This document shows, one piece after another, positions 3,801-26,851 of a stretch of 35,249 nt of DNA (its first letter is position 1; the number at the start of each line of letters is the position of its first letter). The stretch comes from Hyphochytrium catenoides. Lineage: Eukaryota; Protista; Hyphochytriomycota. The notes under the pieces were generated by a model, which worked only from the letters and a program-made list of their open reading frames with translations, was not told the DNA's origin and made no database searches. The translations under genes were made by a program, and so were the position numbers. The stretch spans positions 1 to 35,249 of the forward strand of contig FLMG01001682.1 in the NCBI GenBank assembly GCA_900088475.1. The letters run 5' to 3'.

Positions 3801-6800
3801 AAGCTAGGAGGGGACATAGCAAAGGCCGGGTTCCTCCCAAAGCTTCATGAACTTGCAAGGAAAGAAGAGGTCGAAGCTCGTCGGAACGTTGCTATTGCTC
3901 TTGCCAACCTCAGCTGGGCCGAAAAGGTCCGCGGGAAGCTGGTGAAGGAAAACACTCCTGCGGTGTTGATGCAGCTTCTAGGGACTAGTGACATACAGGT
4001 ATGCCATCTAACGAGTAAAGAAGAGGTGCTCGTCACCTTGCCGCTTGTTCGGTTGGCCTTTGAGCCTATCAGCTAGGTCCCTTGCCAACACTGATTCTTC
4101 CTGACACAATAGGACGCCTTTAACTTTTTTCTACTGTCTTAATAGGTGAAGACGGACTCTACAATTGCTCTGTGTAACCTCATGACACACGTCAGTGACC
4201 AAAGCCAAATGGATGAGAAGATTGTAGATGCATTGGTAGCACTCGCTGACTCTGAGAGCCTTCAGGTACTATTCTCTCCAGTTTGGGCGGTCCCACACAC
4301 TTCCTAACTCCAGCTATCAATCGTTCCCTGCAATGTCTCCTCTTGTTGATGATGATGGCCTGTCCCTCGCTAGGTTCAAGAAGTGTGCTCCCTGGCGCTC
4401 CTCAATCTGTCCTGTGCTCCGTCCGTTAGAGGCGCTCTTGCCGTATCTCAAGGCATGATTGGCTCTCTTATCACGCTTTGTGCGCACGAGAATCAAGCCA
4501 TCCAGACGCGATGCATCACCGCTTTGTATAACATATCCAAGGAGGAGACGAGCTCACGCTTTATCGTAGAGAGCGGAGGAATCCCGGTCGTTGTAGAAGC
4601 CCTCAACGCTATGACAAAGCCTCCCAGCTCGTCTTCCGTAGCTTCATCATCCGCTCTTTATGATTCTACTCTGTCGACGTCTCCGTCCAAGGTCTTCGGC
4701 GGAGGGGAGGTTGTTGGAGCAGCCGAAGCGGCCAAGGCTTTGGAGAATGAGCAGCAGCAGTTAAAAGGCGATATGTTGCTCTACCTCACGAGCATTATCT
4801 ATCAGCTCTCCCTCTCCTCAACTCCCTCTTTCCGCCATGAACTAGTAGACGGTGGCGTTATCGAGTCTATCATTTCCCTTAACCAAAGAGCTAAGGGTAG
4901 CCTAGAACTGAAGAGGATGAGCGCAAGTATCCTGGCTAATCTATCTTCCACGGCCATGGATCACCCTGGACTGATCCCGACCTTTCTCTCTCTTTCTCAC
5001 ACGGTTGATGAGCAGACTCTTCTCCGTATTTCTTTTTCCTTCGCTCTCATGTCACAGAAAGAAGAAGGACGAGTCCTTCTCGCTGCAGAACCTCAGATAA
5101 TCCATACGCTCATCTCGATGATGAGGAGCGGCTTCGGAGAAGTGCAGACTCATTCAGCTGTATGTCTATGCAACCTGGCGAGAGAGAGAAGGAAAGAAGA
5201 AAAGGAGGGAGAGGTTCCAGACAACCAAGATGCATACTCTATATGGGCTGACGGTACAGTCCAGGATTTCATTGTGATTGCCGTTCTGCGGGTAAACAGC
5301 GGCAGTACTAAGGAAATGTGTGCAAGAGCATTGTATAACCTGCTGTGCTCTCCTTCACTCCGGCCAAAAAGAGTAGAGCAAGGCGTAGTGTACGCACTCC
5401 TAAAGCTGGCACGACTTGAGAGTGAAAGAACAAGAGAGCTTACCCTCTCAGCGTTGTACAAGCTCTCATTCTATCCGTCCTTTGTCTCCAAGCTCTTCGA
5501 GATAGAGACCGTGCGATTCTTCTATCAGATAATTGACGACAACCTTAGCGTGGAGCTCAGAAGGCTGATGGCGCACATCCTTTGCAACATGGTCGCCGTT
5601 AAGGGACATACAGAAACCTTCATTGACCAGAAAGGACTGAAGGTAAGACGCCATAGGCTAATGCGTAAGGGGCTATGTAGACCAGATACTTACTGTTTGC
5701 TCTTGCGTCTTTATTCTCTTCTCTTCTGTTTCGTCAATAGATTGTGAAGCTTCTGGGCCAACTTCGAGACTTTGAGATCCGCATGAGCCTTGCCTCAGTA
5801 TTATGCAACCTCAGCACTGAGCCAACTTTAGCACCAGTGCTAGTGTCAGAGAAGTTTGTCCACGACATCGTGATTTTTGGGCGGATGCATGACCCTACGT
5901 CGCGGTATTATAGCGCTATTTCCTTGTGCAACCTGAGCGCTAACAGTCAACTGTTATCCACTCTGTCTGACAATGAGGCAATTTCTACAATGGTTAGCAT
6001 CATGAGACAAGATCCTCGCCCAGAAGTGGTACGGGTGGGTGTCAGAGCCCTTAGAAATTTCATTCAGGACCAGAATAATGCCGCAAGGATAGTGGATTGT
6101 GGAGCCGTGGAAGTTCTTTCATCTGCTCTCTCTGATACGCAAGATGAGGAAACGGCGAACGCCGCAGCCACGCTTCTTTGCATCTTAACCGAGGTGCCTA
6201 CTCCTGGTCTGGGTCCTAGGATTGTGAAAGAGGGAATCGTAAAAGCTCTTCAAAGCATTGCTAAGCTGGAAAGTGAGGGCAGTAGACGGGACGTTGTCTA
6301 TTCTCTAGCCTCACTGTCTCAGTTCCCGGACACTCATGAACTGATGGTGACCGATGGCGTGGTGGAGGCCCTGCAGTACCTTGCTTCCCCTGCCTCTCTC
6401 TCTTCATCAACAATATCTTCTTCAGCTTCCTCCATGACGTGGGCAAGAGAAATTGTATCGTGGGCCTCTCTTACCATCAGCAATCTTTCGACAACGGCAG
6501 ACAGCCTCCACCGAGCGAAGCTTGGGAGCAAATACGGTTTATTCACCTCTTTAGTTGGCTGGGCAGAGATGCCTAATATCTCCATGGAGACGAGATGGAA
6601 TGTTGCCATTACCCTCTTCAACCTCTCGTCAGTGAAGAAAAATACGGCCCAAATGGTCCATGCTGGGTGCGTGAAGACCCTTATAAATATTGTCCAAGTT
6701 GCCACTGGAGGTGCTGGTGGAGTAGGAGGTGGGAGTAAGGTAGGAATGGAGGCTGGAGGTCTACTAGGGCAACAGACGACTTCGCTTCTCCGTCAGCTAT

Positions 6801-8431
6801 GCGCCATGACCTTAAATCAGATATCCGTGGATCAGCCTGCAGGAGTGATGTCTGATGGCCTTGTGTCGTCTCTACTCTCCCTCATGTCCATGGATAAAGC
6901 CGCTATAGAATTGGCGGAAAGTAGAGCTCGAATGTTGGTCAGGCTTCCTCCACTTAACTCCGCCGCCGAGCTCTATACCCCTGTATCTGGAGCCTTAGAC
7001 AGGATCCGTCACCCATTAAAAGAGGTGCAGTGGGAGGAACTCGAGGAAGGAATGGTTTCAAACTCTCTTTCACCAGTGACGATAGAGGCTAGGAGCATTA
7101 GTATGAGGCCCGCCCCGCCGAGGCAGGCGAAGGAGGAAGAATGCTGCGGTTCGTTCATTTTCATGACAGAGACAGAAATGAAGTGCTTCCTGAACAGGTA
7201 TGGCCTTCAGTACTGGCCATCTAGAACTTCCTATCAGAGAAAATAACTTACTTTGTCTGCTTTCTTTCTTTTTTTCTTTCTCCTTCTTCTGGACCCGTTC
7301 CCAGTTCTATTTGAGCTTCGAATCTATTACCTTCCTAGTCCTCTGCCCCTTGTCCAGATGCCTGGTTATGTCTTGGTGTCTCCTCTATCGTGCTCTCGTC
7401 CTTCACTCCATCCGTCAGCACAATCAAGTTGCATATGTTGTTGCTGACGGTACCTTCAATATAGATATAGAGCAGAGAGTGAGCAGCCATCAATGGACGT
7501 CACGATGGGAGAATTCCGTCCCCGCACGCATGGCGGAGGGATTGACATCAGCCCCGAGGCAAATGCATCACCTGGAGTCAGAAAGCTGCAGAAAACACGT
7601 CTCTCTCTCACACTCCCTACCACCGGAGAGGGTGTTGAAGGTTCCTTAGGGGCCGGGCAAGAATCTTCCCCAGAAGCACTAGCAATTGCCATGGCAGCAG
7701 CGGCTGCAGGTTCTCCGCCTGGGACAGCTGAGAGTGGGGGAGACAAGAAAGAACGAAGAAGGAGTATGGCTAGTTCTGGCAGTGGTGTGAAAGCTGCGGT
7801 TGGAGGAGGAGCGACAAATTCTGAGAACCAACGTGGCGCCGCAGATACCCACAAAGGCGCTGGTACAAAGAGGAGGAGCTCTGGTGCTTCAGGAAGTGGA
7901 GGTGGCGGAACTCAAGGCGCTGGAGTTGTTGGAGGGGGCGAAAGCGTGACATCCGCGAGGACAACGCTCTCCTCCTCAAGGAGTTCTGCTGGATCGATTC
8001 AGGACATGATCAGTCAAACTGCCAAAGCGGCAGAGGCGCAGATCAGAAAGAACAGTGTCAAACTCCTCGGCAATTATCAGACATCACTATCTCCCCTGGC
8101 ATCTCCCTCTTCTTCGTCTTCCTCCTCTACAAGCGGTGCTTCCCTGTTACATAACTCCGGCCAACAAGGAAGGCGCAATCCTGGCCTACTCTCCCCAAAT
8201 CCACCGCCTCTTTCGTCCTATGGGGCGATGGCGCTAGGACACCTTGGTAATCAGGGTTCGAGTCGTGGCCTACTGTTGAGCAGCTCAGAAAGGACAAACT
8301 CTCAGCCATCACCCTCTTCTCAAAGAGGAGGAGCTCCAGGAGGGGTAGGGGGAGCAGGCGGTGACCGCGGCATTAGTTGGGAACAAGGGTATCGTCGGAG
8401 TGAGAATGGATCAAGGTCTTCAAAGATCTAG
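857..8431 (+). CDS. Large armadillo (ARM)-repeat protein, Vac8/beta-catenin-like repeats, ~1860 aa, 11 exons
   Basis: Hand-spliced GT-AG exons 857-1018, 1247-1393, 1599-1823, 1975-2076, 2303-2555, 2833-3156, 3442-3998, 4146-4265, 4374-5642, 5741-7197 and 7465-8431 join in one frame (5583 nt). Many ARM signatures: AALLNL, ALANLS, ALCNL, ALYNIS, SLCNLS, ALRNF, followed by GxxxxLxxL helices. G/S-rich disordered C-terminal tail. The start ATG at 857 is inferred, and an upstream exon cannot be excluded. Confidence 0.88.
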
Positions 8432-10322
8432 TAAAGGTGGTCTCTTTCTTCTCCTACTTGCGGGAACAGCTTGGTGGTGCTCTTGGAATACCTCCTGGGT
8501 TTAAAGAAGCATGGCCGGACGGGTTAGATATACTTTGCAATGCGTATGGACGAAGAGAAGTAGAGTCAAGAAGAAAGGAAGAAGAAGAAATTAAGCTTGC
8601 TGGTTGATAGAGTTATTAGCATCATCGTCATCAAGCTAAGTGATCGAATGACGACTGCCTCCTCCCACTTTGTTGTTGAAACACGATAATAGAGCACTGA
8701 CATGGGCTTCGCAACACCTTCCAGTTAAATCACGGCTCATCGACTGACAGTCTTTCTAGTCATTAGCCGTCGTACAGAGTGAGATAAAGTACTCATGCAC
8801 CACCTTACATTTGATTGTTGGCGAAAGGCGGACCGCGACGTGGCGTAATCGGGAAAATAAGCGGATCTCACATCTAAGGGAAGTTACTTCTCACATAGGC
8901 TGAGCTGGTATGTCAATATGATACTATGATGCTAATATTGCTACTACTGCCGCCGACAGTCTCCCTTAGAAATGGTGCTGAATCACTTCGGGACCGCCTA
9001 ATTTCTCAAACAACAGTCATCCACTGCAGCTCCAGAGATCTTCCCTCTGCTCATCCGGATGTCGTTTGGAAGGCAACAAGGACGTAATATAAGCCTTATG
9101 CTGAGGTTACCACCCTGACGCTTGACTCACTAGCCTGGAGAGCTTTTCCTGTCGCTTGGCTTGATCAAGCGACTAAACCTAGAACTCGGGGATAAATAGT
9201 AAATCTTCTTCCGCCAAATAACAGCGCTACCACGTATCTGAGTAGAGAAGTAAATACCTATGGGCTTACTATAAGATAGCCATCAGGAGGAGCGACGGGC
9301 CAGTTCGTAGTTGACTGTTCTGCGGCACAATGTAGGAGGTCTACTATTATTCACCTGTGCCGCCTTCCTTTTCGTTGCCGCTTTCTCCAGGAGGGGACAA
9401 TATTAGCAGGTGACAGAGGTTTGAGGCTGACCGAGGAATTTCGAGAATGAGCAAGATTAGCTCCCAAGCTCTAACCGCGCAAGGAAAGCCTAATGTCCCA
9501 CGGACAAACTAATTACGAATTCCGTCCGTGTTCAATTTGTTTTTAGTTCAGGCGAAAATGTCTCCAAGAGTTTTCCGAAATGAAGAAGCCGCACCTGTTT
9601 GCGTTTCCTAGTTATCATCGCTCATCTGCTGCTGACCATCGCTGTCTAGGATACAGCAGCTCAGCACTTGGACGAGCGAGGCCCCCCCTGGGGGGTTCGG
9701 GCGTCTGCGTCTGGCAGTCTTCTTATCACACTTTCTTTTCATTGGCTAGCCGCAGGTCCTCTTTTATCGGCTGAGTTGCGGAGAAGAAGGTGCTAGCAGG
9801 ATAGTGTTCCCTTCTTGCTGCGGCTTCTGGAAAGTCAATCATCGGCATCGAGCGGTACCGCCCGTTTACTACTATCTAGTTCTAGTACGGATTCGTAGTC
9901 TATGGCGCCAATGAGGGCTTGATGGCTGAGCTCCTCAGTCAACGAATATGAGCCTTTAGGATATATCTGACTAGCTCGCCTTACTTCTTGTTGTCAAGCA
10001 AATCAATCCCACCACTGCCTGGAGCCGTAAGGCTGTAACGAAGGCACTACCCCCTTACCATGATGCTAGGACTCTTCAGTCGTCAATGGCCGACGACCAC
10101 CACGGGTAAGTGATAACACAAAAAAAAGGTCTCTACGACAAAAGCTCTCTCCATCAGCTGGGTCGGTGGTTCAGATTGGAAGCCACGCACCTATCATGGC
10201 CAGTTCAACATAGACAGCAAGGCTCCGTTCCAGCTGAAACGATATATCTATATATTTGTACTAATCCTTGACCTACCACTAACTCTATGCCTCTCACAGA
10301 GTGCATCTCTAGCTCTCAATCA

Positions 10323-13300
10323 ATGGCGGAACGAGTGCTTATGAGGAGTATAAAGTGGATCTCGGGGACCATGGCGGAGAATCTGTCCGAGGTAATGTTT
10401 GGAAATCACCTTCTTACTTGCTACTGTCGTATGAAGTTTGGCATTGCTGCATGCCATGTTGTTGTTGTTGAATGTTGTTGCAACTAAGAAGGCTCATCAT
10501 CATAGTAGCTGTTGATGAAGGGATCGACTTCTTCGTCATTGAGCAGTCTGCCATGTAATCCTGACGTCTTGAACCGTTATTACTGTGTCGCTAGCTCATA
10601 ATCGTGAATGCTTCAGTCCCTTTCAACACGTCCTCTTCGGCACAGGCCGGCCTACTATCTCTTTTCAGCCATATTTATTCTATAAAATCAAGAAAAGCTA
10701 ATGCCTGTATCAAATACAGAGCGACCTGGATGGAAGCCCCTGGAAAGGGCTTGTCCCAAGTCCACATTACCTTGCAGGCCTAGTATTGCATCCTAAATTT
10801 TGCAAGCTCGGCCTCCTTTCATTTGGTATGCCAACCTTCCTTTGTTCGCTCAATTTACTAAACCACGTCAGAGCAATTAGAGAGTGGAGTCCACAGTAGG
10901 AAAAGAAGGGCTTCTGATTCATGCATAACAGAAGACCTCGCGACGACCAACGGACGGCAAGCAAGGAAGATCTTGATGTCAACTGATTTCAGGGTGACTG
11001 AGGAATCCACTCTCAGCTTATTGGTGTCAGGAGATGGTGCGGCTAACATATGTCCATCTTCTTACTAGTCGTCGATCAATGGTGATGCTATGACCCCCGT
11101 ACTTCCCGTTGTAGAGTTAAGACCAACAGTGCTCACCGAACCTAGCACATCCCAATATACTCTCGCGGCTTCCCATAATATACCCCGGGTGCGTTTCTCC
11201 TCAAGACCCCCCTCTAATCAAAACATTCAAAAGAGCCTAGAGCGGATAACAAGCCAAACAAACGACCTCAATACGCCAACGCTATTTCTTTTGGAGGAGC
11301 TCGCCACCATGACAGCTACAAGCACCGTATCGGGCGTCCTGGAAGTCCTCTTCGACGAGTTGGATATCCTCAGCAACGTTGCCCTGGCAATGTACTGCAT
11401 CAAGCAGCACCACTGCAGTGGCACAAAGGAAAGACTATACAGTCTTCTAAAGCTGGAGGAGGTGGAATTGAAGGAGCGCCTGAGGTACGGTTTATCATAT
11501 CAGCGGGTTTAAGGCCCAACATATCAAAGCGGGCATACAACTTTTTGATCCTCTCACAACGTATAGAGTGGCAATGGCCCTCCAATCAGAGGCTGTCCTT
11601 GCGCCCTACCCTCAGTATGGCACTATCTGTCCTTCATCAAAGCCAGAAGTGCTTGACATCTACAAACAAGGCAAGGCTGCACGTGAACCGAGGAGAGACA
11701 ATCTCGAAGTGATGGATGAAGTTTCCTCTCAAGGAGGCGCAATGGTGGGCCCCCCCTATCTCCTTGGGTAAGAATTTCCTTGTCATCTATCAATGGAAGG
11801 ACCCAAGCCACAAATTGGAGGAATGTAAAGGAGCCCTCCGATCTGACGTCAATCTCACACTTCGTTGCAGGCTGCATTTCACCTTGATAACTCTCGCCTT
11901 CCCGCCCCGGATAGCATTCAAGAGATTAGAAGATGCAATTCTGAGCGTGGGCTCGCCGGCCCTTGATGATGCTATATACGCACTTCATGACTACGTATTG
12001 ACGCTGAAAGCGAGCTCTTCTCTCAGGCTGAAAGAGGAGGCATTCCTTCAGGGAGAGGAAACCTCCAATGAATCCACGATGACAACTCTTGCTTCGTCGC
12101 CATGGAGAACCGAGCTCCTTCCGACGGCGGCGGCAGTGAGTGGGAGCGACATCCCTTACTCATCATGTAGATCACCGGCGCTTGAACTGCTGAGTGACAG
12201 CAACCTTGAGTCGCTCTTCAATAATACGGCGAGTGTCAAGATTCCAGGGCAACTGATACTGGCACATCGTAGGCCGTTGCTCTGCAGTACTTCGTATGCA
12301 AGTCCCGAAGCTTGGGCCGAAAACGTGTCTGACAATGTTCCGAAGCTGCCAGGCCTGGACGTGCTCTACCGACAGCTTCAAGGTAGGCGAAAGCATTCAG
12401 GAGCTTAGAAGAACGTGTTTCGGCGCCTTCCATACTAATTGAAACCATCAAGTCCGCTTAGCCGCAGGGCTCCTCAGTCTACATTCTGCATTATTATTAT
12501 GTTCTGCAGTATGATTGCTGTCTATGTCTTCTCGCTGGTCCAATGCTGCTACTTTGGTGCTCTATAATACCAGCGAAGTGGTCTGCGGTTTCTCATATTT
12601 GCGTCTCGTAGACCCTTAAGCTTATCGTGAACGCTTCATTTAACTCCCCAATTGCTTATCACTTCGGAAGCATAAAGACTGACAGTTTCCACAGATGACA
12701 GGACCCCGATTACGGCTCTTAGAGAAGATCCGGGCATATTCAACCTGCAGCCGGAGGAGGTTCCGACAGAAGCGCGAAATATCTCCTTGTGCAGCTTAGA
12801 GGAAATTAGTACATTAGGAGTTGTCTCTGCCGCCACTGCGAGCTTTTCGGATGGAAATGAGGCGGAATATCCCAAAAGGCCATCTACGGCTTCAACTTGC
12901 CAGGTCGTCCAACATAAGAACTCTCTATTTCCGACACTAGCGAGAATCGCTAGGGTGGTAGTCCAGCTCAGTTACTTTGGGCTCAATCACCTTTCCATCG
13001 AATTACCGATTCTCGAAAGCCAATTACAAGGGGCGGCCAACTGCTGTTGTTTGCGGGAACCAGCCTGCCAGCCCAACTGGAAAGAAGACTCCAGACATCA
13101 AAGCCGCCTAGACGGCTTTGTACTCTGGCCCGTCATGATGCCTGCCAAGGTCTTGCCATCAGAAGAAACGAAGATCATACGTCTCAAGGCAACGCATGAA
13201 GAGCTTCGGGAAGAAACCGGAGAGAGATCTCCGGCACAAGGCGGCAAAACGTGTGCAACGATATCGAGCAAGGTATGTGATACTAGTAGGGATAGCCTTG

Positions 13301-16300
13301 CTTCCCAACAACCTTTTATCTGCTGTATCTGTTTCTCATGATGCTCAAAGAGGGAGAAGAAACGTGAGTGGTGGATGGTGTCTTGTTGTTGTTCGGTAGA
13401 AGATGGTGACGTTGTGATGTCAACTTGTTCCTCGTTGCCTCAGCAAAGGTTGCCTGACGACACGCTTTTTAGGATGAGTCTAGCCACTCTCTAGGGAAAC
13501 GACTCCATGATAGCAGTAGTAATTCGGTGACAAAGAGGAATAGCCCCACAGCGCTGAATGGTCGGCTCAACAGACCTATTCGTTCGGGGTACGCGCCATC
13601 ATCAGTAACCCTCACAAAAACTTCTGTAAGGTATCCCTGTCTGCCTGGCTGCAATAATCCGGAATCAACCGCAGGGAGGCGATTGCTAGCAAAAGGGGAA
13701 AGTTTGCCACATCACGAGATGTAGAAGAACAACGGAACTTAGTTCATCGTAAAGGTAGACCATAGAAATTCGTCAACAGACCTTTAGCACGCCTTTAACA
13801 TACCCACACACGTTATTGTCTAGCTTTGCTATGGCATGAGCCCGTGCTACTTCTCCCAATGAACAGTCATCCCTTCGCCGACGCAAAGACTGTTCATCGT
13901 CACTAACCATAGTTGTTGTGCCCCACCAGCAGCAAAGCATCTGCCTGAAGGAGAGGAGGCGAACCATATGTCGTCTAGACCGGGCGAAGAGACGAGACCA
14001 GCCTCACCTAGTGCCCAGAGGACTGCACCTCCGGGCACTTCTATTAGTCTATGCGGCAGAACGGTAGCAGAGTTAGTCCAAGAGTACATTATGTCCAAGA
14101 AGAAGGGGCACGAAGGTCCATCCAGTCGTAAGAGCAGTAACTCGCTAGCAACTAAAGTAAGATCGACCTGCCCACCGTTGTTGCGGCGGGCTCTACTTAC
14201 TAGTACTTATGATGGATTGATTTGATCACCTCTTTCTATAACTGGTGTTAGGATATCTCCTCCGCCTTTTCGGACCCATATGGAGGAGGACGAAGACCGA
14301 GCGCCGCGCAACGCTTTGACAGAGGGACCATAGCAAGCCGCGAGGCCGCCAGTAAACAAGAAGAGCCTTCCTGCACTATTTTTATCAGGAAGAGGCTCAT
14401 CTCTCTGGCATCACAATTGAGTATCCTCCCCATGTCGGCTAATTGCCCCGTAGAGACGGTGGAAGCATGGAAGAAGATACGAAGTAATGCCATAGAGGGT
14501 CCAAGTGATGCACAACGCCTGCTTGGACTTAGTACGCAACTCAGGTACCCGATTCCTCACGAACGGATCTGCGAAGCGTTTGCTGTTGTTTGTCAAGGCT
14601 AATCGGATATATCATTTTAGAAGAATAGTTGAGAAGACCGCTGGCATGAGACAGAGACTTTACCACCAGAATAAAGCTGAAGGAAGGAATCCTTCCTGCC
14701 TCCAGGATCTTCGGGCTCTGACAATGATGATGACTCTTCTGTTGAGTAGCATTTGCAACGCAACCGTTCCTTCTTCATTATGTGCACTCATTACTCGTTC
14801 TTGCCTCCTTTTCCTACTACTGTGAATTGTTCCTCTCAGTCACCCATAGCTCCTGCTCTTCTACTCTGGCTCAGTGAACGCCACAGCCCACACGTCATCT
14901 CTCTCCAGACTGTGGATATCCTTAAACTAGATTTGTAACCGCCTCCGACCCATCTGACCCTGCTAATGCGTCTGCTTCTTGCTCATGTCTTTGTTGGCAC
15001 AGTGACGCGTGGAATTCGGTCGACCCTATTTCCGTCATTAGGCATGTTGCCACTACTAGCGAGAAGTACTTTTTACTTTTGGGTGATGCAAACGTCGCCC
15101 TCTTGCGAGAGCTGTTAGAGCTGTTACCTGGGGATAGCCTGTGTCACTTGCCTTTCGATGGGTCAACCACTTCAGAGAAAGAAGCGCCCCAACGGAGTAA
15201 GAAGCGGAGGGTCCCTTCATTATTATGCTTGTTGTTCTCAAAACTAAGTCTGTGTTCATGAAGGGTATCATAGGCTCGAGCCCCACCCAGACAAAGTACC
15301 TCTGGCGTCTAAGGAGGAGACAGCTAGAGAACAGGGCGGAGATAAATGTGAAGCTTTGCAGCAAGATGGTCATAACTGTCTCTCTAAGGAAAGAATCTCT
15401 TGAAGTGACCTCGTCACTGACCTATCGCTACATGTCAACAGAATGCCGTCCAGCAGTTCCAGCTGACCCTGAGCCAGCGAACTGCGTACAGATTCCAACC
15501 ATGGCAATTAGTCTGGATGCGCTATGTTCAGAGGCCATAACCACCAACGTGGATTTGGTGGTTACCCTTCGAGAGGAATTTGGCGTCAGTCTTCTATTTG
15601 AGCGGCAACTGGCGCCCTGTGTGGACGTTGTGATTGACGAGACGGCGTGTATCTCCATTGTTAACCCTCTTGACATCATATCCGGTAATTTTATTATGAG
15701 CCTTGGCCCGCTTCGTTGTACTACTCACGAAGGTTCATATGTGACGACATTTTTGCCCTATGTGCAATAAGAAGATGATGCGCTGAAGTCCTTTGTGAAG
15801 AACCTGACACTAGTCGCGTTGCACTATCAAGAGGTAGGATGATAGCTCAAAGAACCGCTAAAATTGTCAGTTTAACGACTCTTTGTCTCTCATGGCAGTG
15901 CTGGATTATCATTATAGGTATCTCGCTCTCCTTTATGCCGGCCTGGACGTTATTTACCTGCTTATGCTACTCTATGCAAAAACACCGACCATCGTCATTG
16001 AGAAGATGATTATGCAAGGCCGCCCGGTGAAGCCAAAGCCGTACCTCTAGATACGACGAAGCCGCAGCCTGTGCTAGAGTTGCTCATATCCACTCAGCAC
16101 TTCCTCATGGAAGTTTACTTCCTTTACGGGTAAGCATCAACCCTCATTGCTAGGGCCAGTAGAAGCCTTGTCTTACCACCACGAGCTGACGCACCTCCAT
16201 GTATGCCATGACTTTGACTTGAAGCACGGGCGTACTCGATGTCGCTAAACTGGTCAAGCTCGCAATCGATACCGTCGCTGTGCAGAGGTGTAAGAAAAAC

Positions 16301-16699
16301 GGCCTCCTGCCGGCGCAATGGGTGTCCCGTCGGGAGCTGAGAGAAATGCCGAGCTGCCACGAAGGAGTTCTGACATCAAGCCACCTTCTGAACCCTATCC
16401 AAGCGTGTAGAGTACTGCAACAGGTACAGGTTCAATGTATAGGGAAAGTATATTGAATTCCGTCCCTCTATTCTCAGTCCAGCCGGTTGGGACTCTCTGC
16501 GAGAGTCTTCCTGAAACTGGCTGCCTCCTTCTTTAAGGAGGAATCGCCTTCACATTAAAGTACTAATCCCAATCTCTGCCAGGGTGACCTTCTGTCCTAT
16601 CTAAACTACGGATTGACTCCGGAGCAACAGGAGGAGGAAAATTCCTTTTCGCTTTCACAGCACCAACAACTGCTATATCTGTTGCATCTCCCGCTCTAG
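10323..16699 (+). CDS. SHOC1: SHOC1/Zip2-like meiotic crossover (ZMM) protein with degenerate XPF-like domain and HhH, ~1290 aa, ~21 exons
   Basis: Frame-consistent exons: 10323-10391, 10720-10825, 10932-11023, 11069-11484, 11567-11767, 11871-12382, 12695-13272, 13473-13630, 13675-13754, 13930-14156, 14252-14544, 14621-14745, 14850-14934, 15060-15196, 15291-15368, 15442-15684, 15772-15833, 15899-15917, 16051-16129, 16225-16423, 16583-16699. The spliced C-terminus reads CSEAITTNVDLVVTLREEFGVSLLFERQLAPCVDVVIDETACISIV...KSFVKNLTLVALHYQECWIII...YGTGVLDVAKLVKLAID...AQWVSRRELREMPSCHEGVLTSSHLLNPIQACRVLQQGDLLSYL. This matches, in order, the motifs I recall for the SHOC1 XPF-like/HhH region. The 5' exons and start (10323 or 10371) are less certain. 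Confidence 0.72.
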
Positions 16700-16773
16700 A
16701 ATTTCTCATCACTCTCGAAATTCTTTTTACTGAGATCTTCGGCCTGCTTCACTCTTGCTTTTACTGCTTTTGG

Positions 16774-18594
16774 TTATCGCTCTCCACTCACCCCTTGAGG
16801 GTCTGCGATGTCGCCGACGAAACAATTGGTGGCCGCAATAAAATCTTTGATTGCTACCCGCAACTTGACGTCAACTTCTCCTCCTCCCATCCAGAAATAT
16901 GGAGGCTGCAGACTGAGAATCTTGTCGGAGAGTATAATCTGAGGGTGGAGAAGGAACAGGGATAAAGTCAGAACGGAGAGTAGATAACCTCAACTGAGAG
17001 TATATCCTTCAAATAAAGCTAAGTAAGGATCAGTCACAATCAAGATGAAGGATGAACTCAAGAGGATCTACAAGTCAGTCAGACTTCACGATTGCTATGC
17101 AAGGGCCTACAGGTATGTTCTCTTTCATCCCAAAAGGCGAGACTCCGTTATGATAGAACCCAGTTAGCTTATCGGATGTCTGAGGATAAGAGGGAATCGA
17201 GAGTCAGATAGGCTTAGCGATATAACTAGAAGTACAAGGTGGACTCGCCCAAAGGAGACAAAATTACCGTTGCATTCTTTATCTGTCAAAGAGGCCTTCA
17301 TATCGAAGAGAACACATGACATAGCACACTACAATACCATAGGGCCGCAACTAGCATTACCTCCTCCAAAGCATGTCTAAAGTTGTACTTCTTTCTAGCT
17401 GGTCTATCTGGATCACCCTCTTTCAGACCTCTGACGAAGCGAAGCAGTTTCTCCGCATTGAGCTTGGTGGTATACTGGACTATTACGCAGTAGTACCTGA
17501 AGATATAAAAAGCGGAAGCGTTAGCCTTGTCGTTACTTACGGCTCTCGCAGGGAGACACAAGGTATGCCGTCGTCGCCCTTATTCGCATTCCTAACTTCT
17601 TACTCGTTCGCCATGAGACTTGTGGACGTGCGATGCCCTCTCTATCTTCTTCGCACCTCCTACATCTTAACTAACCTGCTATTCTCTCTGTCTTCCCAGT
17701 CATTCCTAGTACAAGCTGAATTTTCCATGACGAGGCTTTTTGTCAAATGTTCGACGGAACATTGTAGTCTCGCACTGGAAGGATGCGTTAAGACGCTTGA
17801 TTAGATTAGGCTAATGGAAGGGATAAGACCTCCAAAACAGACAGAAGGGAGGTGCGCAACAGCGGATGAAGAAGAAAATGAGATGGCTGCATGACAGATA
17901 CTATGGCGCAGATGCGAAGAGAAGAGAGACAGGGGTAGAGAGAAGCGGCAGGGCGCCGTTAGTCACTGTCTTACGCTCTCTCCGCGAGTGTCCAGCTATA
18001 ATAGTCGCTAGCCACCACTTCAATCTTCGCGCTGGAGACTAGGAGTCAGACAACAACTAACCAAAGGCCAAACCCATGAGGGAGGAGAGGCATCAGCAGG
18101 CCAACAGCAGTACGCGAGAGAGAGCTACCTTCAAAGCACTTCATCACTTCAGCGAGACGACAGGATGGAGAGTCCTGGCGAAACGAGACACAGAGAGGTG
18201 AGGAGCGCTGTCTGACTTACCCTGACGCGCCTAGCTTTCGACAGCTCTGACGAACACGAACGACAGGTGGTAGCAACTCCAGAGGGTGATTCACTCCAGA
18301 TGCTACTTCCTCTAACAATCTGATCCTTGCTTCTGCAGCTTTTATTGCCTCTGAAAGCCTCTTCACTCTGTCATGCAAGGGATCATGCTGCTCGCCCTTC
18401 TTTCCCTGGTCTCTGCTCTTCTTATGCCCTGACTCTCCCTGCTTCTCCCCTTTCTTCCTTTCCACTGCGCTCTTGTCAGTAGTGCCACAGGTCTGGGACG
18501 AGCAGGAGCCGCTGCGTGTGGGGTCGATGACAGTGAATACCGCTGTTTTCTTTAGCTGGAAGCGGCCATCGAGAGTGCCGTAAGGAAGAGCCAT
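16774..18594 (-). CDS. YbaK/ProXp (INS-superfamily) aminoacyl-tRNA deacylase-domain protein, 299 aa, 6 exons
   Basis: Minus-strand exons 18594-18221, 18031-17975, 17774-17676, 17496-17361, 17179-17111 and 16938-16774 total 900 nt in frame. The translation contains VASDYYSWTLAERAARLQCSVEHLTKSLVMEN (conserved Lys), RYYCVIVQY, LTGFYHNGVSPFG (GxxxP loop) and IILSDKILSLQPPYFWMGGGEVDVKL. Confidence 0.9.
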
Positions 18595-19222
18595 CTTTAC
18601 TGTCTGCTTTCTCTTATTATCAATGTCCCCTTTGCCCTCCTGAAGCCTTGCTCTGACGGTATCACCCGCCAGACGCTCGCTAGGAGAGCTTTACTTCGGT
18701 TATCCTGGAGGAAGGAACGCCTAGCCAAGCTAGCTAATGATTAGCCTGTGCAGCCGGACTCAACGACCGGACCGGTGAGGGCCAGCAAAGGCCATTGCTG
18801 CCAAGGAGGGAGGAGGAGGAGGAGCAGGTGGGAGCAGAGGGCCAAGAACAAAACCTTCACATCCATGATGTAACAAGATACAATAAAGAGGTGTTAGCGG
18901 CTCCTGTCGGATGTGGGCAATGCGAACGTACTTTGAAGAGCTTTGATGAAGGCTTCCGAGCTTGTTGCGGCGCTTGTCGGAGCGCTGCTGACGAGTGAGC
19001 GCATAGTCCCTGAGCTTTCCCTGCCCTTCTATGAGCTGCAAAACGTTTGATCTCCAGCTTGTCTCGCTCTCTTGTTCGTCCTCCTTTTTTCTCAAGCTTC
19101 TTGGTCATTCTCTCTCTCTCCAGCTCCTCTTACAGGGAAGCCGAGTCTTCGCCCGTCATCGTGCAAGGAGAAGGATGCCGTGAAAGGAGAATGGACGATA
19201 GACTTAAAGAGAATCAGGCCCA
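18595..19222. promoter_or_regulatory. Probable bidirectional promoter region between the YbaK-like gene and MSH3
   Basis: The divergent ATGs at 18594 (-) and 19223 (+) are separated by 628 bp. No specific element was identified. Confidence 0.5.
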
Positions 19223-22200
19223 ATGAAAAGCAATCAGCAGACGCTTCTTTCCCGTTTCTTTAAACCTGTAAAGGCATCCGGGGAGGACGACGACAAATCT
19301 CGCCATCTTTCTTCGGCGAGGCAACAGGGGACGGCAGAAGAAGACGCAGTAGTCATTCTCTCAAGCGATGAGGAGGCAGGCGAAAAGGGCAATGCAAGCA
19401 GTGCATCTGTCGCAGCGTCTCCATCTCCTCTTGCTAAGTTAGGAGGTGAGTGGTCGCGGCGAGGGGAGGTGGCAAGGGAAAAGGTTGGCACATGGGAGTG
19501 ACTGAATGTGATGGAATAGCGAAGGAGAGGATGGGACGAAGGAAGAGAGAGCGAATGCAGGGTGCTTTATGCTTTGGTGTGACACCGAGAAAAGGATGCT
19601 AAGTGATCAGACACAAGGGGTCAACCACTAGATGAATGCCTGGTGTCCACTCTGAACCACACGGTTGTCCATTGCTCTCCGCGTCTCTTTCTGGCAGGGC
19701 TCTCTCGCCTTCGTGCGAAACGGAAGGGTCTAGAGGGGGAGAAAGCAGATCAGTCCGTCCATCCTGGGAAGAAACCCAAGCTGGACCAGGAAGAAGAAGC
19801 TTTTCAGAGATTTGCCAGTGGTAGCTCCGTCTCTGTCTCTGTCTCAAAAAGCAATGCTGTATGGGAGGAGAATGACCGTCCTGACAAGACTGGAGAAGAC
19901 GGTGTTGGAGAAGAAGAAGCTACACCTTCGAAGCATGACGGAGAGGAGAATAACGAAGAACCAATCAAACCAGAACTCTTCAGCCGCTTCTTCCATGAAA
20001 GCGGTCCTGCCACCAGCTCCCGAAATGGGGACAAAGGGAAGGAAGGGAAAGGGGCTCAGCGGAAGAAGCCAGTCAAGTACACCCCGTTAGAGCAGCAAGT
20101 CATTGAGCTAAAGGCTAAACATCCCGAAGTTCTCCTCTTGATTGAGTGCGGCTACCGGTTCCGTTTCTTTGGGGACGACGCCATTGTAGGTGCCTACTCT
20201 CCCTACCTCTCTCTGTCTTTCTGCTTGCTTACCCTTATCATCCTTTCCTACATATAACCCTGAGGTATCTCGCTCTCTCTTTCTTAGCCGGCCTACTGAT
20301 TCCCTAGTCTTCTTCTTTCGTTACTCTTGCTCCACTCTAACATAACTTCGTCTGTCGACTGGATAGTGCTTGGAGCGAAATCCTTCTCGTTCTCTAGGCT
20401 TCTGACCTTTGCCCAACTCCGCCTTTTTGTGCAGCCATACGCTTACTCATCTTTCTCCCTCTTGTACCACTGTCTTGACCTCTTCCACCCTCGTTGCAAA
20501 CGACAATCTCTTTCTTACTGACTCACCTACTTCTTTCCGTCCTTCTTTTTCAACAGAATGCCGCACGAATATTGAGTATTCAGGCCTTTGCTGATCACAA
20601 CTTTATGGTCGCGTCTATTCCAACTCACCGCGTTCACATCCATGTTCGCCGGCTCATCTCGAGAGGATACAAGGTGGGGATCGTGAGGCAGACCGAGACC
20701 GCCGCTGTCAAGGCTCTGACCGGAGAGAAGCACAAAATGTTTAAGAGGTGAGGTGGAAGTATTTCAGGAAGGGGAGGGCTTCCTAACCTGCCACTTGCTG
20801 CCGTGTCTATATTCTTAGCCCGCCAGTTTATTGTAAAATGGCCTATAAGCTCTGCTGGAAAGGTGTTTCCGCTTTCTCTTCTGAGCCTAATGTCAGTCAT
20901 CCCATCCCTCACTCGTCCCTCCTCCACAAAGAGCCCTGTCGTCAACCATCCTTCTCTGCCGTTTTTTCTCTGCTGTCTAACTACTGCTATGTTCAGAGAG
21001 CTGGACCAGCTTTTCACCGCAGCCACAGTTTCTGAGGAGGACTTGGAGGACCTGGCCTTCCGTATGACATCTATACGAGGTTTCAATGCTGAAGAAGCTG
21101 GAGACGAGGGAGACGAGGTTCAGTGATACTCTTAGTATATTTACTCGATACCACTTAGTTGCTTTACCATCTGTTCAACTCTAGAAAAGTCTCGCGGAGG
21201 GTGCAACCCTCTGCCTTCCTCACTCTATTGCGCGGCTCTCATCGTGTACAGCTATCCGGAGGACACTGATGATCCAGCTGATCTGGTCGCTCGAATCTGG
21301 CATCTTTTCTGAGATAATAATTCTCTGGGAGGCGTTACTACTGAACACTAACCCTAATCTTGGTCCTTACTCCTAGGGAGATGGTCCAGTCAAACCTTTT
21401 ACAGCAGCAGACAAGGCAGAGCAGTTTATCGCTTGTTTTTACGAGGAACACACCTCCTTACGTGGAGATACGAAGAGTCAATTAGATAACAAGAGGAGTG
21501 GAGAAGGCCATTTGGCTTCTGCAGCTTGCGAAAGGAAGCCAGTCCATCAAGGTCCGAAGGATGTGGCTGTCGTTGAGATTGCAATGGTGGCCGTGGACAT
21601 CAGTAGCGGCAGGATAGTCTATGACACGTTCACAGACCAACCTTTGAGGTAGAGCACCTTGTTGCTTCGTTTTGCTCTCACTCTTCCACTCCGTTTTAAG
21701 GCGTTCTTTTGATGGGTGACGGGCTATTGTGAGCCTCGAGTGTCTCACACGATGTTGTTACCATCATTTGCTCTTGTGACCGTTATTTTCCTCGTTCGGT
21801 GAGTACTTTGGGCTTACCCTATTCCGCCAGAGGGCATCGCTGCGCTCTGCTACGGAAGGTCGACTCTTACTTCCTATTCTACTTGTAGGATGGAGACGGA
21901 GAGAAGATTGAGGGACTTGAGTCCAATAGAGATCATAGCACCGCAAGGAGGTCTGTCTCATGCCACAGAACACGTCATAAAGCAGTATCAGTCGAGGTAT
22001 GCTCCCTCTATAGCAACACCTGGAAAAGGGTCAGAGCAAGAAAGAGGAGAGGTGCGAATAGAAAGAGTTCCAGACACAGCGTTCAACTACGAAGGAGCGC
22101 TAGGAGAACTCGTAGGACTCTTTGGGCAGTCCATAGCCTTGGATGATAAGAATCGACGAGACAAGCCATCTTGGGTTGAACCGACCGAGCAACAGAAAGA

Positions 22201-25200
22201 GAACAAACTGAGACAACAAGAAGCTCTTGCCAGAACGGCGAAAGATCAGTCGGGAAACTCTCTTCCGTCATCCGAGCTTTACGACCAGATCGTACAACTC
22301 TCCCCCCTATCTTTGTGTTGCTTCAGGGGCCTCTCCCTACATCTCCACCGGTTTCGTTTGCAGGGACTTTTACGATATCCTAAGCTTGAGGAGTTTCAGA
22401 AGAGGACACACATGCTTCTCCCTGGATCTACCCTCACAGACTTAGAAATTATGGAGGTGATTGATGCTCGCTTGCTTCCACTTGCTTCCCAATCCAATGC
22501 TGCTTTTGGGGATCTGTTGTTACTGTTAGTCCCTCGGCTTGATCTACCACTAAAACCTTTCACAATGCTCTCTTCGCTAAGCATAGCCTTCGACTCTCTG
22601 CAGAGATTAGAGGATGGGAAGAAGCAGTATTCTCTTCTTTGGTTGGTGGATCGCACTCATACTCCCTTTGGGAGGAGAATGTTACGCGAATGGCTTAGAA
22701 AGCCCTTGCGAGACCTAAGGTCACAGGCAGTTGTATACGCAACACAGCTTCACCTCTAGTTTTAGCCGTACTGCTTAGGGAGCCCTACACTCCATGTCTT
22801 CGTCGCCTCTCTTTGGCCATGTGGCAGAGCTGTTCTTACCGTCCTCTTACTGACTCCTTAAATTGACAGAGCGTCTCCTTCTTAGGGCTATAGAAGAGCG
22901 GCTGGAAGCAGTCTCAGAATTAGCATCTGCTCCTGCTGTGCTAGAACCATTTATTGGAGTAGGCCCCAATTTACTTCGTCTAGCTGCTTTCTCTTTCGTA
23001 CCAGTTCCTGACTTTAAGTCATTTCAGTGTGAAATTGTTGGGCGAGTCTCGGGCGTAGGCTGACACAGATTTTGCTTCTTTACTCCTGCCGCTCATGAAT
23101 TTGCTATCCCCCTCTCACACAGAACTGTGGCTTGCGTCGGCTCAGGTTTAGATGCCTACTCAAATATTCGAACTCCGCTTCTTTTTCTCCCCCCAAGGTC
23201 CTTCGGAAGCTCCCGGATCTAGAGCATCGTTTGGAACGTGTGAAGTGCTTGAAGAGTCGACCACAGGAGTTTGAAAGCATCGTCAGGGCAATTCAAACAG
23301 TCACAGAGGTTTTGCCTGTTCCTCATCAGGTAAGGACTATGCAAAGTGGGCGAAGGAACGGGATACTGCTCTAAGTATATACATTTCCCCGTAGGCTTCC
23401 TCGTTGAGCGCCTCGCTCCTACGGCACCTATTTCTCTCTTTACCGTCTTCTCTTTCTAGGATCGTGAAGCGTGTCTCGGAGCTGATCAGTCTGGAGGCTG
23501 CTGCAGCCAAAGACATTGTAAGTCTGCCTGAGATTACTTTAGTAAACAAAAAAGCATCAAGGCCCTATAAGTTAATAGTCAAGGGAACGGAAAGTGGTAA
23601 GACTGAGAAAAGGAACAGTTCGATCTCCCAGTGCCAGAAAAAGTATATGGTGGAGAGAGGGCGGTCACCACGAGTATATGATCGTGGAGAGAGGGCGGCG
23701 GTCACCACGAGGCAATGGGCAAAACAGCAGGTGGAAACTGGCAATCCAGGTTGAGTTTCACTATTACCTTTGCCTCCCCCAGGTTGGGACCTTCACATCC
23801 TCTGAAGCATTCCCGGAAGTTTTTCAACTTAAGGAGCAGATCAATCAAGTGGAGGGCCAATTTGACGAGGAATTGCAATCAATCAGGTAAGCGGGAGAGA
23901 AGAGAATCACTGGGAGGGGAACTAAGGCATATGCTCTCTTGCGCTCTGCTCCATGATATATCCGCGCTCAACAAGCTTAGCGGCGGAACGGCTGAGATCT
24001 AGTCCTGACTGTTTATAGTTGGCGTCCTTCCACTATCACATGCCCGTCCGTTCCGGGATATTTCTCATATTCTGCCTCGTCTACAACTTGAAGGCGGACG
24101 TTACGGAAACCTCGGGTTCAGTTTTTCAGTCTGAAAACCGGGCCTTCCAGCTCGCGGGATTATTTGATAGAAGTGCCGCATGCTGAAGTTAGCCGCTTGG
24201 TCCCCCCGGATTGGCAGACTGTGAACAGCACAAAGACGATGAGCAGGTTTAGGACACCAAGGACCAATGACTTGTGTCTGCAGGTAACAGTAACGCCAAG
24301 CAAAAAATCCTTGTTCGAGATGATATTGTAGCTAATGGACAGGAGGCCGGACCGCTAAAACCAATGGTGCCATCCTGGGCCATCCGTGGGCGTGCCGCCT
24401 CTGCTTTGTGTCCAAGCATTGTCGCTCTTCGTCTTTTTTCGACGTCTGCTACTTTCTCTGCCTTTGGGTTAACAGCCAGAAAAGATGCCATTTACTACGG
24501 GCCATGCTTTGGCTTCTCAAGTTCCGAGTCCTCTGCCACTGTGTCTCTAGAATAGGCCGTGTTCATTTGCACCGTTCTTTTCAGGAACCACGTCCTCACG
24601 CTCTCTGTTGTCTCTTTGGCTTGTCCTGCTCGGCCTTCGTAGCTGGAAAGATTTAAGGAAGAGCTGATGATTGAAGCTGATCGCAGCTGGAAGAAGTTTC
24701 TCAGCAACATCTTGCGCGACATCTACATCCCTATCTCTATTACTGTCAATACTCTCAGTCATTTCGACTGTCTTCTCTCCCTTGCGCAAGTCGCTACCAG
24801 GCCCGGTAAGTAGTAAAAAAGATAGGCCGAAAGTGAAGACAGAGGAAGTCCGCATGAGGGTAGGGCCGAATAGGTGCGGTATGGAGGACGGGAAGATGTC
24901 AGGTCGTCGTTATCAATGCTCATTCAGCATGCCTTCGGACTCACAGCATATTATTGACGCTCTCTTCTCTGTCTCTGTCTCCTCGTTCTGCCGTTCACAA
25001 GGCTATTGTCGCCCCTCTTTCTCGTCGAGACGAGTGACGCAGATTGTTGGTGCTAGACATCCGCTTCTGGATCAAGTGATGGGAGGATCGTATGTACCGA
25101 ACGACATCAATTTGGGAGGTGATGAGCTACAAGTGACATTTCTGCTCTTATCCGACAAAGTGCTAAATTAAGGTCGTTTGGCGCCTTTACCCTCGATGGC

Positions 25201-26851
25201 ATGGGTCCCTCGCTTCCTCTTCTAAATGGATCCCTCACTTCCTCTGCTTGTCACTGTACTAGCTAGTATCTAATATTTGTGCGCGCTGAAACTCACTTCG
25301 CTTTCATTTCTAAAGGTGGCTTGGAGGATAGGATTTGCACAGTGTTGACAGGTCCTAATATGGTGAGTGAATTGAAAGGAGTGTTGCTGGCATCGGTTGT
25401 AAGGCATTCTTGGTCCTCCTGAATCTCTCTCCTCGTGCCTACTCTTCTGATAATTTGTGGCCCAACCTTGCGATCACTGATATATCTCTTCTAATGCAGG
25501 GAGGGAAATCTAGGTAAAGATATACCAGGCAGATCCCTACTACCTTCTTCTCAACTCAAGCTAAGGGTTTACCTTAGCCAAGGTTGCGATACCGTTGCTT
25601 TCTTCTGTGTCAGCAACTTGTCCGCTCGAGAGTCTCAAGATCTGCTCACTTTTCTCGTCTTCTGATGAAGCTTTGTCTGACTATGTAGTCTCGTATATTC
25701 CTCATCTCACACCACGTTACCCTAGTCTAACTCTCTTCTCCTCGGGTCAAACGGTTGCAGCTTCATAAAGACCGTTGCCCTCGTAGTCCTCCTTGCACAG
25801 GTTGGATGTTACGTACCCGCGACCTCTGCCTCTCTTTGCATCTATGATGCAATTTACACCCGGATGAGTGCTACAGATGACATCGCGACCGGAAGGAGTA
25901 CATTTTTTGTAGAGCTTTCACAGACAGCCGAAGTGCTAAAGAATGCCACAGGTAAATTCCGAGTAGCTACCTTCTCCACGTCCTTTCCATACGTCCTGAG
26001 CTGAGAGAAGGACCTCTAGCAGCAGCTTTGGTCTACACTTTACGTTGTTGATTATATTCTCTCTTGCGTTAACAGTGATCATTGCGATACCAGCGGGCTG
26101 GTCCCTCTATGTTCGCAACCACTCTCTCTCTCTTTTTCCCTCTTTGTTCCTCTTTTACATCCTTCCTCTACCATCTGCCCTTTAGTCTATCATCACCCTA
26201 ACCAACCTACTTTGCTGTCGCATGTTCGTGTTTTTCTCACGCGCTCTCTTAGAAAACTCCCTCGTCATTATAGACGAACTGGGCCGAGGAACGTCTACGC
26301 ATGATGGAGTGGCCATTGCATACGCTACCCTCTATTACCTGGTAAATGCTAGGAAGTGCACGACACTTTTTGTCACGCACTATCCCATCCTCGCCGAAAT
26401 TGCTTCTCTCTCTCGCCCTGGAGCCGTCATCAACGCTCATATGGGATACTTAGAAGTGGCGGAGGATGGAGAAGAGCTGAGCCAACAAGGAAGAGATGCA
26501 TCGGGAGAAGATACGATCAACGGAAGAGATGTGTCCCAGGATTTAGAGGACAGTGATGGTGGAGAAAGTACCCCACGGAAGCGAACGGATAAGGCACAGG
26601 GTGCGCAAGGTAGCCCTGGCATGGAGAGGAGCCAAGAGAGAGTGAAGAGGGATGAACCGAAGAAGAGAGTCGTGTTCCTGTATAAGCTGATCGAGGGGGC
26701 GGCAAGCCACAGCTATGGCCTAAATGTGGCTCGGATGGCTGGGCTGAGCCCACAGCTGCTAGCGAGGGCTGAGGAGAAAGCACGAGAATTTATTGAGAAG
26801 AATCAACATCGAAGCTCCTCTCTCTTCCTCAACGCAAAGGCAAAGACATAA
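19223..26851 (+). CDS. MSH3: DNA mismatch repair protein MSH3 (MutS-beta subunit), 1243 aa, 18 exons
   Basis: Exons 19223-19445, 19698-20185, 20557-20747, 20997-21117, 21377-21648, 21889-22456, 22604-22719, 22886-22958, 23198-23329, 23395-23517, 23783-23886, 24094-24283, 24643-24805, 25002-25118, 25316-25362, 25500-25513, 25761-25951, 26253-26851 (3732 nt). N-terminal PIP box [12 protein letters not shown]3-type mismatch domain [12 protein letters not shown]...[13 protein letters not shown] and [32 protein letters not shown]. Walker A TGPNMGGKSS, Walker [20 protein letters not shown], and [11 protein letters not shown]. Confidence 0.96.
23642..23709 (+). repeat. Imperfect tandem duplication (31 nt + 37 nt) in MSH3 intron 10
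   Basis: agtatatg-gtggagagagggcggtcaccacg is followed by agtatatg(atc)gtggagagagg(gcg)gcggtcaccacg. Confidence 0.85.

Follow-up and report, generated by a model that had tools for sequence, protein, structure and literature searches.

The 35,249-nucleotide (nt) contig FLMG01001682.1 of Hyphochytrium catenoides (GenBank assembly GCA_900088475.1), taken over its full length and referred to as the window, harbors on its plus strand an unannotated multi-exon gene of about 21 exons, encoding a protein of about 1270–1300 amino acids. The C-terminal part of this protein, the tail, is quite likely a pseudonuclease of the XPF family. For the gene as a whole, a factor of the SHOC1/Zip2 type, known from meiotic crossover formation, is the assignment that fits best, and we give it about an even chance. 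The gene is invisible to the calling of open reading frames (ORFs) and absent from protein databases, and it is validated by conserved introns, a 19-nt microexon and heterozygous insertions and deletions (indels).

A fragmented gene and its counterpart in a related organism

In the six-frame ORF listing the plus strand between 10.0 and 16.7 kb displays fragments only, the longest stop-free runs extending over 231, 221, 189 and 147 codons, and none of the runs in this region matches a Pfam family above threshold. Direct reading of the DNA, which is eukaryotic with about 50% G+C, depicts stop-free runs that end at GTA-type donors and restart past pyrimidine-rich ..YAG acceptors, with GT..AG introns of 46–328 nt linking the short pieces into one frame. 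The model built independently for this strand comprises 21 exons (3801 nt, 1266 amino acids, 10060–16558; exons are numbered as in Table 1), and 18 of its 20 donors begin with GTA. An exon chainer, i.e. a dynamic programme employing codon log-odds, simple splice scores and introns of 40–400 nt, assigns a score of 128 to the plus strand, compared to 48 for the reverse strand and 11–36 for 15 dinucleotide shuffles. Shuffled DNA of this kind also yields joined ORFs of 700–800 amino acids; joining without a frame break is thus weak evidence on its own, and the small exons needed independent support. Gene finding by codon usage alone led to unstable models, the bias being too weak. An earlier note on this DNA, made from the letters alone, had proposed a hidden gene of about 21 exons and about 1290 amino acids of which only ORF fragments are visible, and both statements agree with the model obtained here. 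The interval given there is 10323–16699; in the present model the start may lie at 10060, and the end is the TAA of 16556–16558.

A phmmer search of 1.84 billion representative proteins with exon 16, the exon containing ..VDVVIDE.., identified one real relative, P0005 (E 4e-4), which is an ORF call on L001, a 9.5-kb Logan contig from a related organism. The other four matches of this exon are repeat or Ig-like proteins and were discarded. L001 is collinear with the window, as seen from exon-sized tblastn islands of 43–52% identity at window positions 12922–13014, 15495–15662, 15774–15836 and 16253–16435. The first of these islands is 52% identical to L001 3477–3569. Exon 16 is 43% identical to L001 5405–5584 (E 2e-10), exon 17 is 48% identical to L001 5685–5743 with intron phases alike on both sides, and exon 20 is 46% identical to L001 6115–6297 (E 1e-17). 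Exon 19 has its counterpart at L001 5923–6022 (..HHFSMEVIILH), again with phases alike. The microexon is common to both loci and measures 19 nt in each, at 15899–15917 in the window (CWIIII) and at 5849–5867 in L001 (CWIVVL); in the two loci alike it reads ..CAG/TGCTGGAT.. and is followed by a GTA donor. Altogether the window and L001 share five C-terminal introns at identical positions and in identical phases, and the spliced tails are free of stops and 34.6% identical across 289 aligned residues. The last six exons of the earlier proposal, including the microexon and the LVALHYQE/CWII junction, are borne out by these five introns.

Residues conserved between the window and L001 comprise ..SLD.., ..CSE.., ..N-V/L-D.., ..TL.., ..(V/I)DVVIDE.A..S(I/L)V.. 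and ..LKSFVK.LT.., followed by CWI.., ..HF.MEV.. and ..PA.W..RREL.E....HE..LT.S.LLNPI.AC..L. The conserved part of the protein is confined to the C-terminal 230–290 amino acids or so, while the remaining N-terminus of about 975 amino acids is nearly unalignable with L001, in contrast to the neighbouring gene, for which this comparison gives 57–75% identity; the long N-terminus evolves fast, like that of Zip2/SHOC1. L001 nevertheless permits a collinear single-gene model of 1241 amino acids. In the protein collections searched (15 billion predicted proteins) the family consists of these two loci only. Word-indexed homology searches with P0005 and with a profile of exon 20 return L001's own ORFs and nothing else, and no relatives were found in metagenome scans.

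Further support for the splicing model comes from heterozygosity. Contigs from three DNA runs (X1–X3) were aligned to window positions 10800–16750 (5951 letters). Over these 5.95 kb the runs contain two haplotypes at about half depth each, and the differences between them amount to about 176 substitutions and 31 indels (about 3%). Either a diploid organism or a mixed sample was thus sequenced, with a high degree of heterozygosity. The indels listed for confident exons are all multiples of three or compensated within five bases (−3 at 12016, +3 at 12050, +3 at 13197 together with +1 at 13204 and +2 at 13209, and −3 at 13258), and indels of 1–2 nt fall into introns of the model (+2 at 11852, −1 at 15750). 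Exon 16 begins downstream of such differences, at the acceptor 15441/15442, because of the +2 indel at 15404, an inserted TAA at 15384 and a TGA at 15223. This acceptor is in phase with the donor at 15197. Alternative starts of exon 16 at 15274, 15314 or 15390 were rejected on account of the same 2-nt indel and the stop-bearing insertions upstream. A deletion allele of 54 nt (14921–14974) is located in the intron before exon 15 and spans a candidate acceptor at 14931, which was discarded, the acceptor at 15003 being supported in the same phase by L001. Seven of the substitutions listed for confident exons are synonymous and 12 are not, a pattern of weak constraint as expected of a fast-evolving protein.

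At the 5′ end the acceptor at 10299, in front of exon 2, is preceded by a CTAAC-like branch site and a pyrimidine tract, and the gene may start with the upstream exon 10060–10105 instead of the ATG at 10323 within exon 2. At the 3′ end the frame of exon 21 continues past the TAA at 16556 for 46 more open codons up to a TAG at 16697–16699. No acceptable intron was found that removes this TAA and reaches the TAG at 16699, and contigs of run X1 match the window over 16484–16750. Exon 21 resembles L001 weakly; the tail of L001 extends further and bears a faint resemblance to the frame behind the stop (..DLL..L..). The TAA may represent a recent truncation, belong to a gene with an alternative 3′ exon, or be due to chance. 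A 3′ extension to 16965 suggested by the dynamic programme overlaps a conserved minus-strand gene and was not adopted.

An XPF-like motif frame in the conserved tail

The tail contains the segment V-D-V-V-I-D-E-T-A-C-I-S-I-V-N-P-L-D, which in an alignment made by eye has the same length of 18 residues as the XPF motif GDxn(V/I)ERKx3D. In human XPF this motif extends from G703 to D720, with D704, E714, R715, K716 and D720 conserved (PMC3620063). The corresponding frames are V-D-x8-I-S-I-V-x3-D in the window and I-D-x8-L-S-L-V-x3-E in L001, both of exactly 18 residues. The Asp at position 2 is invariant in both, position 11 is occupied by Ile in the window, and an Asp is found at position 18 (Glu in L001). 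At the E-R-K positions the window has S-I-V and L001 has S-L-V, which confirms the absence of the catalytic ERKxxxD motif reported in the earlier note. The sequences quoted there, namely LFER..VDVVIDE..CISIV, LVALHYQE/CWII across a splice junction and HEGVLTSSHLLNPIQACRVL, are present as well. Since E714, R715 and K716 are replaced, equivalents of D676 and E679 are not evident and no Pfam ERCC4 match is obtained with the exon pieces, the protein is predicted not to be catalytic.

The hydrophobic strand CWIIII follows 25–30 residues past the last Asp of the motif. Its place in XPF is presumably taken by VLLIEF, and what we take to be the subsequent ..LHFPRLRILW.. and helix of XPF matches ..QHFLMEVYFLY and a helix in the same order. 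As this alignment crosses three splice junctions, it also speaks for the splicing model. Further downstream one helix-hairpin-helix (HhH)-like element, ..LLNPI.AC..L.., is conserved and has a suitable position and shape. Upstream of the XPF-like domain, the L001 counterpart of exon 15 is predicted to be helical by AlphaFold2, with a predicted local distance difference test (pLDDT) score of about 70–75. The 78-nt intron of L001 in front of its last exon (6286–6363) is in frame and stop-free, and the matching 54-nt intron of the window holds a stop. In L001 this intron could be retained as coding sequence, and the HhH region might thereby gain a connector helix.

Among library profiles, the FANCM pseudonuclease domain (PND, Pfam PF17949) tops the matches of exon 16 in three overlapping submissions (E 0.12, 0.033 and 0.021), a weak match of 13–15.5 bits versus a cutoff of 23.6 that covers profile positions 16–62 of 125, half the domain being located on one exon, and that is suggestive by the identity of the family and the place of the match only. 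Exon 20 with its HhH-like element matches neither a library profile nor a PDB entry.

Proposed assignment to the SHOC1/Zip2 type and competing explanations

In the structure of the Zip2:Spo16 complex D538 is the sole conserved active-site residue of Zip2, the ERKx3D region is lost, and the C-terminal domain contains a tandem HhH2 (PMC6411835). The best HHpred template for Zip2 is FANCM (4bxo), and Zip2 orthologues of related yeasts are only 23–26% identical (PMC5859969). The protein described here resembles Zip2/SHOC1 (MZIP2, C9orf84; part of the ZZS complex) in being large and rapidly diverging, and in what appears to be an XPF-like central domain that is conserved and has an HhH region behind it, close to the C-terminus. 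By-eye alignment indicates the same pattern of loss and retention, with E-R-K missing and the first Asp of GDxnERKx3D kept (D538 in Zip2). In the libraries the FANCM pseudonuclease comes closest, just as HHpred finds for Zip2, and an active helicase is missing in both. In contrast to Zip2 with its tandem HhH2, one recognisable HhH-like element is seen here, and no sequence or profile match to any Zip2/SHOC1 entry is detectable. In mammalian SHOC1 a helicase-like fold is predicted upstream of the XPF domain (PMC6411835).

Comparison to the other members of the family reveals both similarities and differences. XPF (ERCC4/Rad1) and MUS81 have the 18-residue motif with Asp at position 2, V/I at 11, Asp at 18 and equal spacing to the next strand, but differ in their E714, R715 and K716, which are S, I (L in L001) and V here, in the residues equivalent to D676 and E679 and in being represented by Pfam ERCC4; with E-R-K absent, an active XPF or MUS81 was discarded. 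FANCM, which pairs with FAAP24, provides the sole Pfam model matched (PF17949). Its catalytic motif is likewise degenerate; it is set in an XPF fold, behind which come HhH hairpins that lack the PGhG consensus. It possesses, however, an N-terminal SF2 translocase and keeps CD-D-x-R where the protein of the window has VD..S-I-V; it was rejected, as none of the large exons matches DEAD, ResIII or Helicase_C, even with E-values of up to 10 admitted. EME1/Mms4, the non-catalytic partner of MUS81, likewise evolves fast, varies in its N-terminus and possesses HhH in addition to a C-terminal nuclease-like domain. The protein of the window differs from it by about twice the usual EME1 length, if all exons belong to one gene, by the retained first Asp and by its affinity to PND instead of ERCC4, none of these differences being decisive. 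SHOC1/Zip2 fits best because the first Asp is kept, the affinity is to PND, the size is large and the N-terminus diverges very fast.

By analogy with Zip2/SHOC1 we infer the fold, the partner proteins and a meiotic role as follows. The tail would consist of a central domain of the XPF/ERCC4 type, in which the first Asp of GDxnERKx3D survives and the catalytic E-R-K triad is gone, and of a degenerate HhH region behind it. Such a protein would not cut DNA. In association with a small ERCC1-like partner of the SPO16/PTD type, it would attach to branched intermediates of recombination. A scaffold of the ZIP4/TEX11 type would be docked by the long variable N-terminus, and all of them together would lend joint molecules the stability needed for class I crossovers. 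If the SHOC1 assignment is true, the gene is a very divergent addition to a family whose members regularly escape sequence searches, and a concrete marker for a ZMM (class I crossover) pathway in this organism. It would then be a new member of a known family and no novel kind of system, since fungi, plants, animals and Mycetozoa are already on record as having SHOC1/Zip2 relatives (PMC5962103). A wider interpretation is unlikely: a genuine ZZS-type crossover factor in a poorly sampled eukaryotic lineage in which it had never been annotated, which might speak for a full crossover pathway of the interference type and, with it, for sex that has gone undescribed, or else a new branch of XPF-family pseudonucleases, distinct from SHOC1, FANCM and EME1.

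Several results weigh against a SHOC1-type protein with an XPF-like tail. Searches with the exon pieces give no significant match to any XPF-family member, PDB profile searches with exons 16 and 20 and searches of the ESM Atlas and of NCBIfam find nothing, and in the phmmer search of 1.84 billion representatives the ORF of L001 is the sole real match. No SHOC1/Zip2 entry appears in the Pfam, PDB and 1.84-billion-protein searches with exon pieces, the sensitivity of such piecewise searches being low. The PND match is weakened by the spurious families UPF0515, ANGEL2_N and SAS-6_N, which reach similar E-values on other pieces, and by the copy of L001, which does not match PND. AlphaFold2 models of the two largest contiguous pieces, each run with the exon of the window as alignment row, are unusable (pLDDT 47 for residues 1–205 of P0005 and 45 for L001 6088–6519), and for the latter Foldseek returned nothing but noise. 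A second HhH element is not evident in the tail, so that of the HhH-like segment claimed in the earlier note one conserved element stands. The part for which an XPF-like fold was proposed there fits the motif frame residue by residue and gives the weak PND match, and the searches with exon pieces produced no significant profile or structure match to SHOC1, Zip2 or any XPF-family member. It is from such blank or noise-level results of every objective search that the alternative of a lineage-restricted protein without an XPF fold, resembling the XPF motif by chance, draws its strength, as well as from the restriction to two loci in the collections searched, the blank metagenome scans and the nature of the motif match, a by-eye alignment of hydrophobic patterns and a small number of residues. 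We regard this alternative as rather unlikely: the spacing agrees over the 18-residue motif, the strand at +25–30 and the HF..strand-helix succession, across splice junctions; among 24,736 Pfam models an XPF-family pseudonuclease surfaces on exactly the motif stretch; and the residues kept between the two species coincide with motif positions. If the tail does belong to the XPF/ERCC1 family, it might still be a non-catalytic domain other than SHOC1, such as a divergent EME1/Mms4 or a pseudonuclease peculiar to the lineage, at work in somatic repair or in the processing of replication forks. Any member of the family would be compatible with the motif frame and the weak PND match, no SHOC1-specific match was found, and EME1/Mms4 is, to our knowledge, near-universal and also fast-evolving. 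Size, the retained first Asp and the preference for PND are all that separates SHOC1 from the other non-catalytic subunits of the XPF/ERCC1 family. Nonetheless we hold an identity of this kind to be very doubtful. The Pfam ERCC4 model usually recognises EME1 and gives no match here, the best match being the PND of FANCM; the first Asp of the GD motif is kept as in Zip2 and FANCM; and about 1270 amino acids with a long N-terminus suit SHOC1 (1444 amino acids in human) better than EME1. Of the divergent SHOC1 claimed in the earlier note, the loss of E-R-K within an XPF-like motif frame is retained, and the distinction from an EME1/Mms4-like or other non-catalytic member is not.

The size argument depends on all exons belonging to one gene, which is probable. 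The weak link is the middle stretch, exons 9–14, whose borders shift with the parameters and which shows no significant similarity to L001. Its product of about 285 amino acids is rich in S, P, R and K and probably disordered. In a constrained dynamic programme the stretch 13273–14873 scores 26.5, compared to at most 17.6 in 56 shuffles. The region could instead contain two adjacent plus-strand genes, an N-terminal one ending at about 13340 and a second one running from about the ATG at 13968 and including the conserved tail. This arrangement takes advantage of the middle 1.7 kb, the weakest part of the model with its parameter-dependent borders, its modest coding score and its dissimilarity to L001, and of the frame itself, which stops at 13339 if the donor at 13273 remains unused. 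The C-terminal gene would then encode about 560–600 amino acids and be of the size of EME1 or Zip2, which would also favour the non-SHOC1 identity discussed above. The 578-nt exon nevertheless closes precisely on a consensus donor, AAG/GTATGT. The frame can be followed without interruption along a path whose donors are good and whose score exceeds that of every shuffle, and L001 is compatible with one collinear gene of comparable size (1241 amino acids). A division into two genes appears somewhat improbable.

Exon coordinates and neighbouring genes

The exons of the single-gene model and the convergent neighbour are compiled in Table 1. Exons 2–8 include the stop-free runs of 147, 95, 231 and 221 codons.

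Table 1. Exons of the plus-strand gene model and the adjoining convergent gene (window coordinates; letters in brackets are the labels of the tail exons).
Feature	Position	Strand	Remarks
Exon 1 (candidate)	10060–10105	+	putative start ATG; consensus donor GTAAGT at 10106; would join exon 2 in frame
Exons 2–8 (N-terminal)	10300–10391, 10720–10825, 10872–11036, 11115–11484, 11567–11767, 11871–12382, 12695–13272	+	about 675 amino acids, poorly conserved
Exons 9–14 (middle)	13473–13588, 13675–13754, 13930–14156, 14252–14531, 14629–14745, 14840–14873	+	uncertain; best path
Exon 15	15003–15196	+	putative helical region 5′ of the XPF-like domain (..KYFLLLGDANVALLRELLELL..); acceptor position and phase as at L001 5023
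Exon 16 (A)	15442–15684	+	first half of the putative XPF-like central domain; 18-residue frame V-D-x8-I-S-I-V-x3-D
Exon 17 (B)	15772–15833	+	putative helix past the motif (..LKSFVKNLT..LHYQE)
Exon 18 (C)	15899–15917	+	19-nt microexon, CWIIII; putative strand aligned with what is presumably XPF VLLIEF
Exon 19 (D)	16051–16129	+	..QHFLMEVYFLY; putative helix and strand aligned with what is presumably XPF ..LHFPRLRILW
Exon 20 (E)	16225–16423	+	putative final helix of the central domain, linker, first HhH-like element (..LLNPIQACRVL..)
Exon 21 (F)	16478–16558	+	model ends at the in-frame TAA 16556–16558; preceded by a 54-nt intron with good acceptor
Convergent neighbour gene	16777–18690	−	five exons, 40–75% identical to L001 6598–7822, order kept; bounds the 3′ end of the plus-strand gene

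On its exon pieces the convergent gene at 16777–18690 matches no Pfam family. Beyond it, a multi-exon gene of the MutS family is located on the plus strand at 19643–26851, with MutS domains I, III and V and homologues named MSH3 among chytrid, ichthyosporean and animal sequences (37–42% identity). A meiotic neighbour of the MSH4/MSH5 type was considered for this gene at 19.6–27 kb and dismissed, given the presence of MutS domain I and the name MSH3 borne by the homologues. MSH3 functions in mismatch repair, and its adjacency offers no meiotic context.

Upstream of the SHOC1/Zip2-type candidate, a large armadillo-repeat gene occupies 2742–8431 on the plus strand; four long ORFs there give ARMC5-like and Arm repeat matches. 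Towards the other end of the window, an intronless ORF of 1508 codons that matches no Pfam family (28559–33085, plus strand) forms part of a stretch with strong purine (A and G) skew.

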